A stretch of 64,000 nucleotides of DNA from Hyaloraphidium curvatum SAG 235-1 (Eukaryota > Fungi > Monoblepharomycota), in contig JAIVFI010000030.1 in the NCBI GenBank assembly GCA_025558095.1, positions 186,001 to 250,000 of the forward strand. Reading direction: 5' to 3'. Below the pieces are notes generated by a model that had not been told where the DNA came from, searched no databases, and worked only from the letters and a program-made list of their open reading frames with translations. Both the position numbers and the translations under genes were made by a program. This document shows, one piece after another, positions 1 through 9,665 of this stretch (position 1 is the first letter of the stretch; each line of letters opens with the position of its first letter).

Positions 1-472
1 CGCTGCTGTTCCATGGAAAGAGTGGCACCGAATGCGAGGATGTTGAAGCGGAAGCTTCTCTCCATGTAGGGAACGAGCAGGCCCGGATCCGCAGCGATGC
101 GGGCCTTGAGCACAGCGTGCAGCTCATCGTACGAATCTCCTTCGGCCCAAAGCTCCACCACGAGCTTGACAAGGACCGACCGCCTGGTGAGGCGAATCGC
201 TTCCTCCCGCGATGACAGGTGGATCTTCACAAAGACCGCGTCCTGTTCCGGACGAAAGCCGCGGGAGAGACAAGGATGGGCAGACAATACAACCGCGATT
301 AGGCCAGCATATGAGGAATGCTTGAGGGACAAACCGGGGGGGCGTTCTTCCACTCCGCGACGTCCTCCTCAGCCAGTTCGACGCCCTCGGCCTCCGCGAT
401 CGATTGGAACTCCGGCAGCCAGAAGTCCCGATGCACATTGGGATACTGGAGCAGGAACGGAATCCGTCCCAT
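1..472 (-). CDS. TRM11: tRNA (guanine-10-N2)-methyltransferase catalytic subunit, 5' part (runs off window start)
   Basis: ATG at 472. Exon 1 reads MGRIPFLLQYPNVHRDFWLPEFQSIAE; a GT..CAG intron spans 334-243; then DAVFVKIHLSSREEAIRLTRRSVLVKLVVELWAEGDSYDELH...SFRFNILAFG. This resembles the Trm11 N-terminal (THUMP-like) region. Confidence 0.8.
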
Positions 473-640
473 ATTCTCCTTTCTTCCCCCCCTCTTCTTC
501 CCCTTTTTCTCCCGTCTCCCTTGCAATCTGCTGTCTCGCTCGGTAAAGGACTTACTACTCTATGCCTGAGGTGCCAAGCGCGGCGGTTCGGACACACGGG
601 AGCTATCTCTGCGTCCTTTAGACGTGCGTATCGACTGCCG

Positions 641-3600
641 ATGTGTTTCCCGCGGTCGCGCCGGGGCGGTGGCTTTGGCGCCGAGCGGAGGTCGCGGGGT
701 TGCCGGGTCCGCTTTCCGGCCCCGTCGACACCCCGGCGGCACACCAACGGCGCCTGGGGAGCTCTCCTCCGTTGGTGGGCCGCGGTCTTTGTGCTTGGTG
801 CACGCGTGATGGCCGGTAGTTGCGTCCGGCGCGGCGTCGCCGGCGGTGCTCCGGCCCCGGCCCGAGCGCACGACGACACCGCGACCGAGGAACAGAAACA
901 GGCCGCACGGAATGCCCACCGAGCTCTTATGGAGACGGTGTTCTACCACCACCTGGTCGGCCTCGGCTCCTTTGCCTTCCTGGGCGCCGGCCGCTTCGCT
1001 GCCCGGACGGCCCAGTCTGTGGCTCCCATGCCTGCGGCGACTTTGCCCTCGACCTCTGCCACCGCCGACGACCTCGACGGACCTCACCTCCACGGGAACG
1101 CGGCCATCGAGCTCACGCAGTGGTCTTGCGTGGCTCTGGTTCCTCACCCTGACGGTAGCGGCCGCCTCCTCCTCGCCATGAAGTCGCCGCACCCCATCTT
1201 CGCCGTCTCGTCCACCGGCATCGCCGTGGACAGCCCACTCGTCTTTGCCGCGCAGCTCCTTTTGCCCCTGCTCCTGCGCCGCATGACCAAGCTGCGCGCT
1301 GGCGACGAGCTCTTCGACCAGCACTCGGACTGGACCGGCGGAGTCCCGCCACAGCTCGCTGGCTACGCCCGCGCGGCCCTCCAGCCCGCGATCAGGCGGG
1401 CGATGGAGCTCCTTGCCGAAGGCGGCTTCGACGTCATGCTCCGCGGACGGCTGCAAGGCGATGGCCTCAACAGCGCGGCTGCGTTCGAGAAGGAGGAGGA
1501 CGAGCTGTCGGCCCCACGGGTGCGCAGCTCCGGGCCGTCGTCCATGATCGCGCCCGAAACCAGCGTCAAGGCCATTGCGCCAGGGCTCAACACCACGTCG
1601 CTCGGCACCTTCCTGGACCGCGAGATGCTGCCCGTTGCACTCCTGATTCCGGAACGCGTGAAGGAAGCCCTGGACGTCAAGGCCGACGCCGCTTTGCAAG
1701 GCCAGCTCGATCGGATTGGGACGGAAGGCATCGACGCCAACGCCATTCCCGACAAGCTGCGCAAGAGCGCGCGTGGCTTGTTGGCGCGGACGGCGCGTGG
1801 CAAGTCGGGCAAGGCAAAGGTGCTGAAGGCCGCGCGCGGGGACGGTGAAGAGGACGAGGACGGTGACCTGGACGATTCAGGGGACGAAGAAGAAGACGGC
1901 GAGGAACCTGGCGAGGAGCCGGCTGCAGGAAGCGCGCTGGAGAGAGTTCGCACGTGGTCTACACGGTGGCGAGATACCATTGCCAAGCGGCAGTGGTCGG
2001 CAGCTCGCAAGGCCGCCTCGGAGGCTCTCCTTGCGGCTCTGGACACCTTGTTTGCCAACTGCACCGAGGAGGCTGATGTTCAGCTCGCTGTTTTGGACCT
2101 CTTGAACCTGACCGACGACGTGCGAGGGCTCTTTCTATCTGGCAACTGGACGCAGGCCGCTCTCAACTCGGCCGCAACCGCAGCACGATTCGCCATCGAG
2201 ACTCTACCCGAGTTTCGTGCTCTCGTTCCTGTTCCCTCGGCACGGGCAATCTCGATCCCCATCACCGGGACCCTTGCGGCGCGTCTCTTGGTCTCCTGGA
2301 TCAGGGCCTGCACCAGGGAGATCAGGATGACGGTGGCGAACAGCCTATCCGCAACCCTGTCCGGGATGGAGCAGCGGGGAACGGTTGGGCCGCAGGACGC
2401 GGCCGACATCAGGGCGATCATCGAGAACGTCAAGCTCGGGTCGGACATCGCCGCCAAATCCTTTGGCCCTTACCTCCTCTTTGCATTTGAGGCTCTCTTT
2501 GCCGGACTTCCTCCTCTCGATCCGCGACCACGCGTTGTTCAATACGGCGATCGGAAGCTTCAGCTCCCTCCGCAATGGATCCCCACGCCGTTCCTCCAGA
2601 TCAACGGCTACTCAACCGTTCCTCTCGGAACCGTTTCAACTCACCACACCGCGCGCAAGACTGGCAGCGCCGCCGTCACCAAGTATGGAGCCGAGGTCCT
2701 CGGCGTCAACTCGTCCCGCGGCGAGAACATTATCATGGTGAGCAAACTGCCTGGGCCACCTGACAGCGAGCCATCTTCTGACTTGCTGGCACCTGCAGCG
2801 CTCCCGTACGCGCCGCGATTACACTCTGCCGGAGCAACCCGCCGCCGCCATCGACGTCGCCCCTCTCCCCGCTCAACGGGCCGGAATGGCTCAGCCGATG
2901 GACACGGAGACTACCGACGACGCCATGAACACGGACGTGGATTTGCTCGAGGCGCCGCAGCAGGAATTCGGGGCCCAGTTGCGGCCCGACGTGGAGGACC
3001 TGGAAATGTCGGAGGCACAACGGGAGGGCTCTTCCTCCGAGGAACGCCCAGTCGTGGAGCCTGCCGCCGCCGTGGAGCCTGCCGCCGCCGTGGAGCCTGC
3101 CGCCGCCGCGGAGCCTGCCGCCGCCGCGGAGCCTGCCGCCGCCGCGGACCGAAGTCAGCTGCGCCCTACCTCCTCGCTGCCCTACCTGCGTGCTCTGCAG
3201 CTGCACATTGGAGGACGTCCGGATCCTCTTCATGCCGAGGGCATCGAGCCGCTACTGCCTTGGGATGCTCCCGCTGCGCCCGCTGCTCCGCCGCCGGGAT
3301 CGTCTGCGGACCCTTCCCCCGCGGTTCCACCGGCCCCGATCGATGAGGACCTGATCTTCGGCCCGGACATGAACGACACCAGCATCGACATGCTGAAGCA
3401 TCTGCTTGGCAAGTGCTCGTTCGGAGCCGGTGCCTCCCGCACCGACGGCGCCTTCCGCGGCTGCATCCCGGAGGCCGCCTTCACCGTCCACCCCGCCAAC
3501 CCGGCCTTCTCGACGCAATCGTTTGTGATGAAGCAGGGCGGACCCCGCTGCTTCGTCCCGCTCATGTTCCGGACCGCGGACCCGGACTACGCCCGCTCGG

Positions 3601-4802
3601 TCATGCTCAACGTACCCTTTGTGTGTGTCGACTTCGGCGAGAAGATCACCGCCATCTCGGTGCTCATGGCCTACGTAAAGCCGGACGACTCGATCGGCGT
3701 CGCTATCACGCGCTTCCACGTCAAAAACACGACGGACAAGGCGAAGCACGAGTCGGCACGAGCGGCTGCCGAGGCGCAGAAGGGCGACAAGTACCGCGCC
3801 GACTTCAAGTCCTACACGTCCGGCGCCGGCAAGGCCCGGACCTGGAGCAAGTTCGAGTTCGACGCCTACACCCAGAACCTCCTCGACACAGCCGGCCCGA
3901 TCTTCGACCAGTCGTACAGCCGCGAGTCGCTCAAAGCCGCCGAGACCCTCAACCGCGCCACGGACTCGCACCGATACAAGATCGCCAACGATATCCTGTT
4001 CGGGGTCGATCGCACCCAGCTCATGGTGACCCAGATCCAGGCCAGCTACGCCGCGGCGAAAGAGTGGGAGAAGCTGCAGAAGCCTGCGGCAGAGGAGCCA
4101 CGGCAAGACGGGGAGCCGCAGCACTCGCCTGCCGAGGCCGAACACGCCCAGGCGGCTACGATCGCGGAGGAGCTGATGGAGGCGATGGCGCCGGAGATGG
4201 AGCTGGTGCTCGACGAAGCTGATCGCGCAGCAGGCGCAGAACAGGCGAGCGCAGAGGAGCATGCCCAACAAGGCGGACCAGCAGCTGACGGGCAGCACGA
4301 GGAGGACAAGGAGCGCGCGCGGCGCGAGCAGCGCAACGCTTTCATCGCCGGCAAGGTCAAGGAGGCGGTCGAGAGCCTCAGGGCTGAGCTTGCCGACGGC
4401 CGCAAGGAGCACTACAACCCAATCGTGATCATTGGCGACGGCGGCCATGGCGGGCGGACCCCGGATCCCGACTCGCTCGCCGGGTTCCTGGTGCGGCTGT
4501 TCCTCGTGATCTTGCTCAACGAGTGGGGCTCTTCTCAGGTAGGCTGGAGCGTCCTGCTGCATCGGTGCTTCGTCTGACGGATCTCCGAGCGCTGCCCTTC
4601 GTGCTATTCGAAGCTACTCCCTACGGATTACCTCCACATCAAGCTCTGCCCCTCGTGCCCCGGGCATGACGGTACCGGGAAACTTAAGGTCGAGAAGAAC
4701 GTTTCGGCGACTCTCTGCTTTTATCGAATCTTTCTACACATCCTGGCAACGGGCACGCGGCCTCCGGCCTTCCGTGACCCGACTGCCAAACTCACTACCT
4801 GA
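641..4802 (+). CDS. Giant Fanzor1/TnpB-like RuvC protein (~1250-1350 aa), spliced; start codon uncertain (ATG at 641, 809 or 929)
   Basis: Exons ..2737, 2799-4538 and 4590-4802 are joined by phase-0 introns 2738-2798 and 4539-4589. C-terminal motifs in order: RuvC-I VCVDFGE (D codon 3630), IVIIGDGG (4422), LLNEWGSSQ/RCPSC (E codon 4521), second CPSC (4647), VEKNVSATLCFYRIF...GTRPPAF. This matches the Fanzor1 pattern DPG..GD..vdEyxTSkxCxxC..CxxC..RDxNAaxNi..RPxxF. Confidence 0.8.
3054..3143 (+). repeat. Tandem 18-bp repeat x5 (GYGGAGCCTGCCGCCGCC) encoding (V/A)EPAAA inside the Fanzor-like CDS
   Basis: Three GTG-start units followed by two GCG-start units, read directly from the sequence. Confidence 0.95.
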
Positions 4803-4829
4803 CAAACGAACCAGGTACTTTAGCTGAAT

Positions 4830-5000
4830 GCGTGAGTGCACTGTGGTCGTGCATCGTGGATAGTTTACTCATGCGATGAGCTGTTTCGTGGAATTTGGTG
4901 TCCACCGTTGTGTTTGGTGGCGGTTCCCGGATTCCGTAGGAATCCGTCCCATTTCAGGGACGCAAGGAACCGCAAACTTGACTCCTGTGATCAATATTGG
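4830..5000 (+). ncRNA. Candidate omega-RNA (Fanzor guide RNA scaffold plus 3' guide); boundaries approximate
   Basis: Lies immediately 3' of the Fanzor-like stop. Stems: GCGGTTCC 4920-4927/GGAACCGC 4966-4973 encloses CGGATTCC 4928-4935/GGAATCCG 4939-4946 and TCCC 4947-4950/GGGA 4957-4960. Further stems at 4830-4837/4867-4874 and 4888-4892/4901-4905. Confidence 0.5.
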
Positions 5001-5103
5001 AACTCTTTGCGCTTCATCTGATTCCTCTTCAACTCTACTAGAACATGAAAAAAACACAGCGCATCAAGGGAGCTCAGCAGGGTATCCATGGCAGCTGTTT
5101 CTC

Positions 5104-8100
5104 TCAAGAGGCAGCAGGCGGAACGGCGGCGATCGCGCCATCTGTCGTGACGCCTGAAGGTGGGTCGGAGGCGGCCACCGCTGTCGGTTGTGCAGACTGC
5201 CCGTCTGCGGTCAGTTGTGCAGGCTGCCCGTCCGCGGTCGGTGGTGCGGACTGCACGTCCTCGGTCGGTGGTACGGATTGCCCCTCTGCAGCAGGCGCAG
5301 TTTGGCCCGTGAATGTCCCGGCCGGAACCACCGGAGAAGACGGCGCGGGAACCTCCGCGCTCGGTTTCGGTCCACTGACAGGTGTCAGTTCGATCTTGAC
5401 GAAGAGCGTAGCCCAAGGCACAATGTTGCCGTACACATTGCGCAGGGGAATGTGACGGTAACCTGTCGCGGCGTTAGATTGTGTCCCGCAAAACACTTTT
5501 GGCCTCCTCCCTACCTTGCCGGGCCCGGATGGCGCGGATATTGGCGTGGCAGACGTGATCGTTCGCACCGTAGTCGGAATCCCAGACCTCGAACCGAATG
5601 AAGGCCGTGTCCACGTTGTCTACGACCCATGTCGCCTTTTCGTTCCAGATCGGAGCGAACCCGTTGTCCTCGATGACCTTGGTCTGGTACACCGTTCTGA
5701 AGACATTGGCCGCCCGCACTTTGTCGAGCTGCTCAATCATGCCCGGAGGGACCAGGCGGGCATTGCGGCCAAAAACTTCGACCTCGACGAACTGCCATCG
5801 CAGTGTCAGTGGAAAACGACCGGCAAAACGAATCCCGGGAACTTGCCGGATCGATGATCTCGCTCTCGTAGCCCTGGTCGGCCGGTTTCGGCAGTTGCTG
5901 CGCCGAGATGATCTCGATCGTGATAAAGTGCGGAGCTGGAGGTTCGCCGATGCCGCGCAGGTAGTCTGGCTTCAGCACGTAGCCCGAATCGCCGTTGGAC
6001 CAGAACATCGCCCTGTTCAAGGCCCTGAACTTGTCCACGGTTTGCATGTTCAGTGCGACCATTTGCGCGCTGGGACAGCAAGTCAGCCACGATGATGGTG
6101 ACCGTGCAGCAAGCCACCGACCCTGCATCCCAGAATGGCTGCGGATTGTAGTTTGACGAATCGACGCGCCCTCCCCAGGGGTAGATGCGGCTCGTCTGGC
6201 GCTTGTTGAACTCAACGGCACCCGCCCAGTTCGTAGCAATGAGCTTCAAAGCCGCCACCTCCGAGAAGCTGGACACGAAGCATGCCTTTGCTTCACCTGC
6301 GACAAAACCTCAGGCAAACAGTAGGAATGCAAAGCCCGGCTGGCACCAACGGAGCGCGACGTCTAGGCCTGCAAACTTGTGGTTCTGGAAGTAGACTACC
6401 ATTGAGCCGAGTACCTTCGAAACCTGCGAGACAAGTGGCTTTCCGTCTGCGCACGATTGCACGCGTCAACCACTGCCGGTCGCACATCAAGCACATCGCC
6501 AAACCTTTGCCGACAGCAGTTTCGTCAATGTCTCCTTCCAGAGCTTCGATCTGATTCACTTCGTTTGTGGAAATCCGCTTAACCTCCTTCTCGCCCGATT
6601 CCGAAGATGCCGCCCCCTCCTGCAATGTTGGTGGTTCCAATGGTTGCTCGACGAGCAGCGCCCCAGACACATTGGTCGATGCGGCTGTTGCGACAATCAA
6701 GCCCGACACGGTCGCTGTGGGTGTTAGTTCGGCATTGGAATCCGCGACCAGTGCCTGATCGCCCTCAGTTCCGAATCCCGTGTTCATCGAGCCGGTTCGA
6801 AGAGCCGTCGGGCCGGTGCTTGACTCCACGGGTGGCACCACGATGGACTCTGCGAGCAACACACACGACGACTGAGTCGCGATCAGGGTGACGTCGACAG
6901 TGACGCTACCTGAAACAATAGTAGCGGGAATGGATACAGTTTCCGGGGCTTGCGCGACTTGAGGCGCGGCGACCTCCGGCACAGCGGCAGGTTGAACAGA
7001 GGCAGCCGCGGGTTCGAGCTTCTTGGGCACATATGCCCGATCTTTGAGGAGGAAGCGCCCGCGGAGGCTCTCAGGGCTGGGCAACGTGTCGGGATCGGCG
7101 CTAGGTACTGGCTCTGTGATGAGAGCATCGCCAAGCACCTCGCGCAGGATCTTTGCCATTTCTTCTTGTTGCGGTATCGAGCAGTGGTTCTCCAAAGACA
7201 GGATCGCCGGGTAATCGGTGACGCAGAAGGCGTACTTCTTGATGGTTTCGATGACGTCGCGGAACTTGACCGCGGATGTGCTAGTAGGCAGCTGGTCAGA
7301 TGCAGGGAGATGGACTGCAGAGCAAACGCACAGGGTAAAGCCGTGGTAGATGACCGGCTGTCCGTCCGCCCCGTCCCAGGTGTCGAGCTCGACGCACTTG
7401 ACGCCCAGCTGGAACGCTCTGATGTAGCCTTCGACGCTGCTTTCGGACTTGAGCTGGTCCCCGAGAAGGTAGGTGTTGTGCGACGAGTTGATGTAGTACT
7501 CAGTCATTGGCCGAGTCATGTCCTGGCATGTGCCAAAGTCCATGGGGTCGAAGATCATCATCGAGCGAGACGTCATAATGGCAGCAAAGTCTTCAGCAGT
7601 CTGCGAGGCGGCCGTGGTGAGCTGCCGCCGTTTGCGGTTTGGGAAGGAACGCACGATGAACTTTGCATCTTTCGCGTAAGCCGTCACGAAGCTATTGAAC
7701 TGATCGTCGTCCAGCGGCATCTTCATGCGCACACTCAGATCACATTAACGCAAGGAGCGTTCGGTCAGCACACCTTTTGAACCTGTGTCAAGAACACCCG
7801 CAGCCGTTCCGGAGGAATGACCATCAACCCGTCGGACCCCGACTTTTCAGCCATGGTATCGAACAATGCCTGCACGTCCTTGCGTACTCGAACGAGCCTC
7901 CACATCTTGCTGAACTCGTCGTAGCTTAACTCGCCCGATTGATCAAGATCGGCAGTCTTTCTCGCGGGTCAGCGACACTAATGGCAAGCGACAAGGCTCC
8001 CAACCACCTTGAATAGCGCGCCAAGGGCATCCTTGGACAGGTTGAAGTTCAGCATGAAGAAAAGTTTCGAGAGGCGGTCCATGTTGACGTTGATTCCTGC

Positions 8101-9665
8101 TTGACCTTTCTTCGGTATGTCCGTCAGGGCCATTTTCCATGCCGCTGCCATCGAAGCTTCATGGCCCTCCGCGAAGAGCTGCATCGAAGTCGTGGCGAAG
8201 GCCTGGACGAGGGCCCGCAGCGTAGTAACCCAGGCAGTAGCGAGAGCCGGGGTCGGACAGACTGGCCACATAGAGCAAGTTTAGCCAGTACGGTGTGTCG
8301 AGCGAGCGTGAAGCCTCACCGAGCCGCAACGCTTGCGGTGTCCCGAGCTCGTACAGGACTGTGAAGCTCCGACCTTGGAGCTCCGCTCGTCCCGTGATCC
8401 CCTCGCGGATCTCCCTTATAGATGAGAGTCCGACTGCGCAAAGCTTGGTCACCCGAAGACAGGAGCCGCAACACGGTTCTCACTTTCGGAAAATGTCGGT
8501 TTCGCAGACGTCAAGCGCGCCAAATAGCTGGCGCCGGTTTCGACTAGGAGCTTGGACGTATCGGCATCCAGTTGCACCAGTCGTTCCTGCTCCGTGCCTT
8601 GAGAGTTGAACGTCGATAGGAAGATGCGGTCAGCTGTGGTCTTCGCAAGCCAGAGAGCCAAGAACACCATCAGACTTGACCTTGACGAGCTTCATCCCGA
8701 GGCACAATGCTTGGGACACGGCGTCGGGGTGGTCCGTGTTCAGATCCACAGCAGATTGTGTCCCTTCCAGAGCCAGGTTCAAAGCCTCCCTAAAGCACAA
8801 AGGCGCTCGTCAGCGCCAGGCGCCGAGGCGTTCCGATAAGACTTCACCTCGTACGCTCCTGCTCCGAAAGAAGCACAAGAACCTCGTACTCAAGAGATCG
8901 AAGCTGTACCCCTCCCCATCCGCATGACATGCCCAGCTCGTCGCCCACTCGAACATAACCGCTGTGGAGGCCTCCTTGATGCTTCACTCTGGCAAGGTAG
9001 ATGGGGACGTTTTGGTCCTCCACCAGGATTGTCCCGCCCTGCACTGCTCCGGGTGGAGGTTCCTTCAAAGGTCCGCTCTGCTGCCGCCACACCAGCAACG
9101 ACGCCGATGCCCCCGGGACGGTCAGAACCTCAAACTCCGGGGAGGCAAGCTCGACTCCGTCCAGCCCAACAAGCGCTCCGTGGACGAAGTTGGCGACTTT
9201 GCCTGTGGAAAGAGTGGGTTCATTCCCTCAAGCAATCACAGCGTCCAGAGCAACTGACCGGGAAGCAATCCGTACTGCGTCATGACCCGGGCGATTTGGA
9301 GGGGCCGGTCCCTGAACCGACCGGCTTCGAATCCGCCCTTGACGGCGTTGGGAGGTATCGTCGACACCGTTGCCGTCACCTAAGGCATCGAAAGCACCTG
9401 AGTTCAAGTCCCGCGGCCGACTCCGGCGACCGCAGCCCACCCATTGCAAAGGCTCCGGCGGGTCTGGTCTCGGGAAGGCGAAACGCTCGGCCGATGCCGC
9501 CACCTGCGCGGCATCTATGGTCTTGATCGACCGGTCCTTCCTGAAACTGAAGGTGCGCTTGACGGGCTGCGGATTCTGGGTCGCCAGGGGCACCGCGGTC
9601 GGGCGCTGCACCTCCGGCTTCGTGTTGACCACTGGTATGGCCCGGGGGGAGCCATTCGCAGCCAT
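5104..9665 (-). CDS. PLC1: Phosphoinositide-specific phospholipase C (PH, EF-hand, X, Y, C2), multi-exon; start approximate
   Basis: X box QDMTRPMTEYYINSSHNTYLLGDQL...CVELDTWDG; Y box SRIYPWGGRVDSSNYNPQPFW and QMVALNMQT..SGYVLKP; C2 YQTKVIEDNGFAPIWNE; EF-like ADLDQSGELSYDEF. Confidence 0.93.
5183..5290 (-). repeat. Degenerate 27-bp tandem repeat x4 (9-aa ADGQSAQPT-like) in the PLC C-terminal tail
   Basis: Units start at 5183, 5210, 5237 and 5264 (consensus GTCGGTTGTGCAGACTGCCCGTCTGCG). Confidence 0.85.

Follow-up and report, generated by a model that had tools for sequence, protein, structure and literature searches.

We analysed a stretch of 64,000 nucleotides from the fungus Hyaloraphidium curvatum SAG 235-1 (JAIVFI010000030.1, positions 186,001-250,000), which we call the window and whose positions serve as coordinates throughout. 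A preliminary description of this DNA had proposed that positions 641-4802 encode a divergent, intron-split Fanzor1, a eukaryotic relative of TnpB, of about 1250-1350 amino acids. The feature is real, a variant Fanzor1 that is larger and more unusual than first described, and it is visible here through a damaged copy. What lies in the window is a non-autonomous, internally deleted and 5'-truncated copy of an H. curvatum transposon of about 10 kb. In our opinion the case is somewhat better than even that this transposon is a copy-and-paste DNA element with a giant Fanzor1-ended gene and a probable omegaRNA, whose insertion proceeds by target-primed copying from one end, with help from the giant protein. 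The surrounding transposon, with its target duplication, fixed 3' end and sister copies, had not been seen in the preliminary description, and neither had a change from D to N in the RuvC-III motif.

The copy is laid out as follows. Labels such as C2, C6, C8, C11 and C13 denote contigs of the H. curvatum genome and, by extension, the sister copies on them; L038 and L039 are homologous loci from two other samples.

459-472, plus strand: left target-site duplication of 14 bp, exactly repeated at 4939-4952, with only these two occurrences in the window.
473-529, plus strand: pyrimidine-rich filler (52/56 bases C or T) separating the duplication from the element's first base, without a match in other copies.
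530-867, plus strand: part of the 5' non-coding region of the element, including a copy-specific ATG at 641; 91-96% identical to the C2 and C13 copies.
868-874, plus strand: deletion joint with a 7-nt filler; positions 2600-8268 of the fetched C13 stretch have no counterpart in the window.
875-2737, plus strand: remainder of exon 7, a conserved region upstream of the RuvC part; collinear matches to L038 open reading frames, E 3e-15 and 3e-10.
2738-2798, plus strand: intron A, phase 0, 61 nt; donor GTGAG, branch site CTGAC, CAG; at the same position in C2, C13 and L038.
2799-4538, plus strand: exon 8, with low-complexity linker, RuvC-I D, acidic insertion, RuvC-II G and rearranged E; homologue matches at E 9e-28 and 3e-8.
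4539-4589, plus strand: intron B, phase 0, 51 nt; donor GTAGG, branch site CTGAC; at the same position in L038 and L039.
4590-4802, plus strand: exon 9, with C4 zinc finger, RuvC-III with N (4698), RPxxF tail and stop; against a profile of this genome's ordinary Fanzor1s it scores 16.6 bits (E 2e-4).
4795-4938, plus strand: conserved structured 3' end, candidate omegaRNA scaffold, common to five copies; the right end of the element is fixed at 4938.
4939-4952, plus strand: right target-site duplication, an exact repeat of 459-472; by analogy with known Fanzor omegaRNAs (PMC10711439) the guide would begin with these 14 nt.

The C-terminus is supported as a divergent Fanzor1-derived RuvC and zinc-finger module with a predicted D-E-N triad. 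The motifs follow one another in a single spliced frame, as the preliminary description had it: the RuvC-I D at 3630, a G at 4434 in the canonical RuvC-II site, the rearranged E at 4521, the two CxxC pairs at 4593-4604 and 4647-4658, and N at 4698 within VEKN. D 3630, the G, the E, all four cysteines and the VEKN motif do not vary among the three organisms compared. The rearranged RuvC-II consists of G 4434 with E 4521 and aligns with the ordinary Fanzor1s; the [TS][TS]xx sequence followed by the C4 finger is present, spanning intron B; and the RuvC-I aspartate, for which the end of a beta-strand is the expected place, is on a strand in the structure model of a homologue. A profile of the family, aligned with hhalign to the ordinary Fanzor1s of the same genome, gave a probability of 87% (E 3.8e-6) over RuvC-II, zinc finger and tail, and the score of exon 9 alone compares with 7.2 bits for the best shuffle. 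The proposal of a divergent, intron-split Fanzor1-type end is upheld by the profile comparison and, weakly, by structure and Atlas matches. The Atlas matches were to clusters from Mucoromycota and giant viruses (0.90-0.91), and their recognition score was low. Scanning the exon sequences against Pfam, PHROGs, NCBIfam and the PDB gave no significant match.

Of the proposed ending, RDxN...RPxxF, the RPxxF tail is indeed present, but RuvC-III reads EKN. The 2013 definition of Fanzor1 requires an RD motif after the zinc finger (PMC3627910); here KN takes its place in all three organisms, while the ordinary Fanzor1s of H. curvatum keep RD. The strict motif therefore fails, but GtFz1 cleaves with a D-E-N triad (PMC11423790), and by analogy the giant enzyme may be active. 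For the same reason we rejected the notion of a dead nuclease, which the D-to-N change could otherwise have suggested.

The size of the gene becomes apparent from the other copies. Reconstructed from these, the full gene is predicted to have nine exons and eight introns of 49-64 nt, and about 2,900-3,000 codons, this size being the sum of the exon lengths in a spliced model that was searched exon by exon; the single frame across the eight introns holds once copy-specific frameshifts and deletions are set aside. Most Fanzor1s have 600-700 amino acids (PMC11423790), so the family gene is four to five times the typical length, and "twice the usual size" does not describe a functional product: the locus is the product of a deletion. 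Between 867 and 875 the window lacks 5,669 nt that are present in C13, a loss that takes away exons 1-6 together with the beginning of exon 7. The start of the full gene lies about 120 nt past the point where this deletion begins.

Could the upstream part and the large Fanzor nevertheless be two or more separate genes, a nuclease-like one followed by the other? We regard this as unlikely. Stops are confined to short GT-AG introns with branch sites, the intron phases are compatible throughout, and there is no gap for a second promoter. L038, a homologous locus from a public sequencing run with fungal-type neighbours, is collinear over 6.2 kb to its contig end; its open reading frames match exons 6-9 in order, and four intron positions are common to it and the H. 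curvatum gene. The introns after exon 4 and exon 5 are at the same codons in L038, intron A is at the matching codon there, and intron B, which falls after SQ and before the first CxxC, is at the same codon in both L038 and L039. The two phase-0 introns of the preliminary description are supported by their splice signals, branch sites and shared codon positions. In favour of separate genes, the C2 copy in the public annotation terminates after 447 amino acids, and the homologue P0003 (L039:525-2015) has a short, different N-terminus, with no sign of the giant one on its 3.7-kb contig. The family may thus include short forms. P0003 also has a CCHC zinc knuckle and a basic patch just upstream of its RuvC part. 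Wider profile searches of the protein set and of metagenome, viral and phage collections returned nothing beyond the two homologues.

The codon differences between copies speak to the protein as well. They number 0.7-0.9 synonymous per non-synonymous (for the remainder of exon 7 against C13, 40 synonymous and 46 non-synonymous codons), and the neutral expectation is about one third. Since the ratio is well above this, the predicted giant protein was under selection while the copies arose.

The original view, that the locus itself encodes a functional Fanzor1 of 1,250-1,350 amino acids, we now consider very improbable. It is true that the frame is open from ATG 641 across the deletion joint and both introns, that the RuvC exons are intact, and that the three segments sum, as proposed, to 699+580+70 = 1,349 codons. 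However, the ATG is specific to this copy (in C2 and C13 it is GTG, with one more base nearby, and the region is 5' non-coding), the frame crosses the 867/875 joint, which is a deletion scar, the true 5' end has lost about 420 nt, and the last intron ends in GAG where C2, C11 and C13 have CAG. In C13 the 5' end, the part lost in the window copy, carries CCAAT-like boxes. The window copy is probably silent.

A search for paralogs, suggested in the preliminary description, found sister copies on C2, C13, C11 and C6 by DNA search of the genome (90-95% identity); an older fragment is also on C2. There are thus five copies in H. curvatum including that of the window, the longest of 10,017 bp. Their 3' ends fall on the identical base in 5/5 copies (4938 in the window) and the next base is G. 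Their 5' ends are ragged: C13 and C11 have the same start base, C2 and the window copy begin later, and C6 consists of the last ~145 nt only. The target duplications, which begin with G, are exact in the window (14 bp), C13 (16 bp) and C6 (17 bp) and weaker in C2 (10 bp exact, 12 with a mismatch) and C11 (possibly 8 bp), so that lengths span 8-17 bp; as a control, the longest random match never exceeded 10 in 5,000 trials. Next to the 5' duplication four copies (window, C13, C6, C2) have C/T-rich fillers, with 52/56 pyrimidines in the window copy and 20/22, 16/17 and 14/19 among the other three, and only 1 in 10,000 window stretches reaches the first of these. The C11 filler is longer and includes 16 nt from the 3' end of the element itself, in inverted orientation. 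In C13, C2 and C11 the internal deletions terminate at short microhomologies or small fillers. The element begins with T, hairpins are possible at both ends, and its 5' start (L015:1843-1865) and 3' end (4922-4938) have in common an imperfect repeat of 11-17 nt, readable as direct or inverted, which is a possible protein-binding site.

Cut-and-paste by a DDE transposase, with terminal inverted repeats and a duplication of fixed length, does not agree with duplications of 8-17 bp and ragged 5' ends. A non-long-terminal-repeat (non-LTR) retrotransposon does not agree either, given that no reverse transcriptase (RT) match was found in the tested exons, introns are kept and there is no 3' tail. 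We rejected homing to new sites directed by the guide, since the only base common to all five right flanks is their first G. The likeness of the target sites to the last ten bases of the element is faint, a little above chance (post hoc p about 0.004).

The conserved 3' non-coding end, about 140 nt, folds better than shuffles (z -2.5); no compensatory changes or covariation were found among the copies, and no Rfam match. Known Fanzor omegaRNAs come from the 3' end of the element (PMC10711439), and by this analogy the conserved end probably gives the omegaRNA scaffold. A 14-17-bp duplication recreates most of the guide target at the left flank of the element, so an active nuclease would have to avoid or tolerate self-cutting; the fillers appear to be located where such self-cuts would fall.

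The fixed 3' end, the ragged 5' ends, the variable duplications, the purine tailing of the bottom strand, the template jumps and the kept introns together point to copying that is initiated at the 3' end. Priming at a staggered target break, from a DNA or unspliced template, fits this and follows from the anatomy. We propose that the target would be opened by two nicks 8-17 nt apart, and that the bottom-strand 3' end, adjoining a G, would prime copying of the donor from the fixed 3' end of the element. Synthesis could jump at microhomologies, giving the internal deletions, and would often stop early, giving the 5' truncation. The new strand would then gain purine-rich untemplated bases and be joined to the other target end, and fill-in would produce the duplication. 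The giant protein would most likely supply one or both nicks, a role that we infer, and would hold the 3' end of the element through the omegaRNA; the polymerase would be that of the host or another acting in trans.

Much of this anatomy could also be read as retro-mobilisation, in which an RT of the long interspersed element (LINE) or Penelope type, acting in trans, would make a target-primed copy of the omegaRNA or of the element's unspliced RNA. Truncation at the 5' end, variable duplications, untemplated bases and an inverted piece are classic marks of that process, and all occur here, with duplications of 8-17 bp and purines on the new strand. The C6 copy (L019:4114-4257, minus strand), with its 17-bp duplication and C-rich filler, is exactly the candidate omegaRNA stretch, and the genome has about 150 RT matches. 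We nevertheless think this quite improbable: every intron is kept in all long copies, there is no poly(A) or repeat tail, and no donor flank is found past the fixed end, though an omegaRNA would run into the flank.

The other alternative is a non-autonomous element of the Helitron2 type, such as CRe-1/-2/-3 of Chlamydomonas reinhardtii. RepHel would act in trans by one-ended rolling-circle copying and the Fanzor would have the secondary role of cutting the second strand or restoring the donor. The CRe elements share this signature, namely intact 3' ends, 5' truncation, internal deletions, variable duplications (7-19 bp), extra bases after the 5' duplication, and kept introns, and it has been attributed to Helitron2 (PMC3627910), the cause being still speculative (PMC10288648). 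Three Helitron_like_N loci reside in the H. curvatum genome, at C2:541600, C35:92638 and C8:491059, and the initial T, the imperfect repeat and the possible hairpins would suit a Helitron2. Against it, there is no shared upstream target motif such as TTTT, the apparently full-length C13 has a 16-bp duplication where full-length CRe copies have none, and a conserved gene of 2,900 codons is hard to account for as a passenger. No RepHel is coded in the element. Further differences from the CRe elements are that the duplications begin with G, the fillers are C/T-rich and the protein is far larger. We find this alternative rather unlikely.

Several points weigh against the one-ended copying by a giant protein that we prefer. 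No copy of the element is intact, and the splicing, the introns and the single gene of this length are predicted from the sequence. The structure model of the RuvC part is poor: the predicted local distance difference test score (pLDDT) is 49, with shallow alignments and a RuvC-like strand order. Its best Foldseek match is Cas12 at E 4e-3, other Cas12s scoring lower; a wide structure search with this model found helical bundles only and no RuvC. The target sites of the five copies have neither an upstream motif nor a guide-like stretch in common. The resident Helitrons and many RTs could do the work in trans. Finally, a transposase or polymerase could hide, unrecognised, in the approximately 1,500 further residues of this divergent family, which are conserved and unassigned; none of the exons tested matched transposase, HUH or RT families.

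The N-terminus is a further weak place. Exons 1-3 of C2 and C13, which the window copy has lost, contain, as judged by eye, acidic motifs in the order of FEN1/XPG/Rad2 nucleases, with long insertions. In a comparison with a profile built from 80 viral FEN-like proteins, the three exons aligned best at the motifs DG, DxD and H3TH, in that sequence. However, this likeness is non-significant (hhalign E 0.09-0.2 per exon, with 4-16 of 60 shuffles as good), an earlier small FEN profile was negative against these exons, there is no FEN1/XPG match to them in Pfam or the PDB, the Atlas matches to the PIN clan are below 0.8, and the single-sequence model of the region (pLDDT 35) is unusable. In our judgement a FEN1/XPG-like 5' nuclease at the N-terminus is about as probable as its absence.

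If such a nuclease is there, a transposase-free, self-mobilising element can be imagined. One protein of about 3,000 amino acids, combining a FEN1/XPG-like nuclease with an RNA-bound RuvC, would make a staggered break of 12-17 nt, the 5' nuclease cutting at the near junction of the opened target and RuvC the other strand, and the freed 3' end would prime copying from the omegaRNA-defined end. We hold this to be doubtful. If true, it would represent new transposition chemistry and the first eukaryotic case in which a TnpB/Fanzor is the central enzyme of mobilisation. The searchable literature, with subscription papers and Repbase outside the search, returned no Fanzor-XPG fusion and no relevant paper on TnpB and XPG.

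In comparison with known systems, the giant is like the Fanzor1s SpuFz1, GtFz1 and PpFz1 (PMC3627910, PMC10530073, PMC11423790) in its RuvC-I D, RuvC-II G, E before the C4 finger, RuvC-III helix and RPxxF. Its introns, which are common in Fanzors (PMC10530073), the gene that reaches the structured 3' end at the right boundary of the element, and N as third catalytic site as in GtFz1 add to the likeness. It differs in its length, in KN for RD, in about 2,400 extra N-terminal residues, in that neither solved Fanzors nor Pfam gave a match, and in the absence of DDE-superfamily terminal inverted repeats. MCi-2 of Mucor circinelloides, an unclassified Fanzor element (PMC3627910), is likewise fungal and long, with a constant 3' and variable 5' part, duplications of 11-12 bp and no terminal inverted repeats; its target pattern, however, is fixed and it carries a partial Crypton transposase, and in the H. 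curvatum element we see neither. Replitron-1 (PMC10288648) is alike in its copy-and-paste mode, variable duplications and short repeat at both ends; in the H. curvatum element no HUH domain is recognised and the right end is fixed, not fuzzy.

Whether Fanzor/TnpB can itself drive transposition, and why target duplications vary in some Fanzor elements, are questions that date from 2013 (PMC3627910) and were later posed anew (PMC10288648). An element family that has this signature, no recognisable transposase and an outsized conserved protein makes them testable. Moreover, intron-rich, very divergent Fanzors with a D-E-N triad escape Pfam, the PDB and surveys that filter by motif, and may be a source of natural RNA-guided architectures with two nucleases.

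The same genome has other Fanzors. At least 10 copies of an ordinary, intron-containing Fanzor1 with intact RD (L044-L053, e.g. C5:5540 and C3:632898) are 99.6-99.9% identical and end sharply on the 3' side, where TA follows in most cases; this is a very young family. Four more Fanzor1 loci with RD (L040-L043) were found, with long open frames upstream in L040 and L042. Related RuvC subfamilies, seen by family-profile matches alone (E 1e-24 to 1e-7), are at C8:89299, C8:331220, C31:133865, C14:250935, C5:742072, C15:287803 and C17:485244. Within the giant gene, the low-complexity linker of exon 8 has an 18-nt repeat at 3053-3148.

As to the insertion site, we had considered that the element interrupts a phospholipase C gene, and rejected this: the insertion point is the start codon of a gene with a UPF0020 match (window 341-472, minus strand, and L021:8446-9354, minus strand), which we take to be a TRM11-like tRNA methyltransferase. 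On the minus strand the duplication begins with the ATG of this gene, which is thereby preserved, but the coding sequence is parted from its 150-nt upstream region. A phosphoinositide phospholipase C gene with X, Y and C2 domains and a 27-nt repeat near its 3' end lies at 5104-8300 (minus strand), and a second phospholipase C-like gene is on the plus strand in L021.

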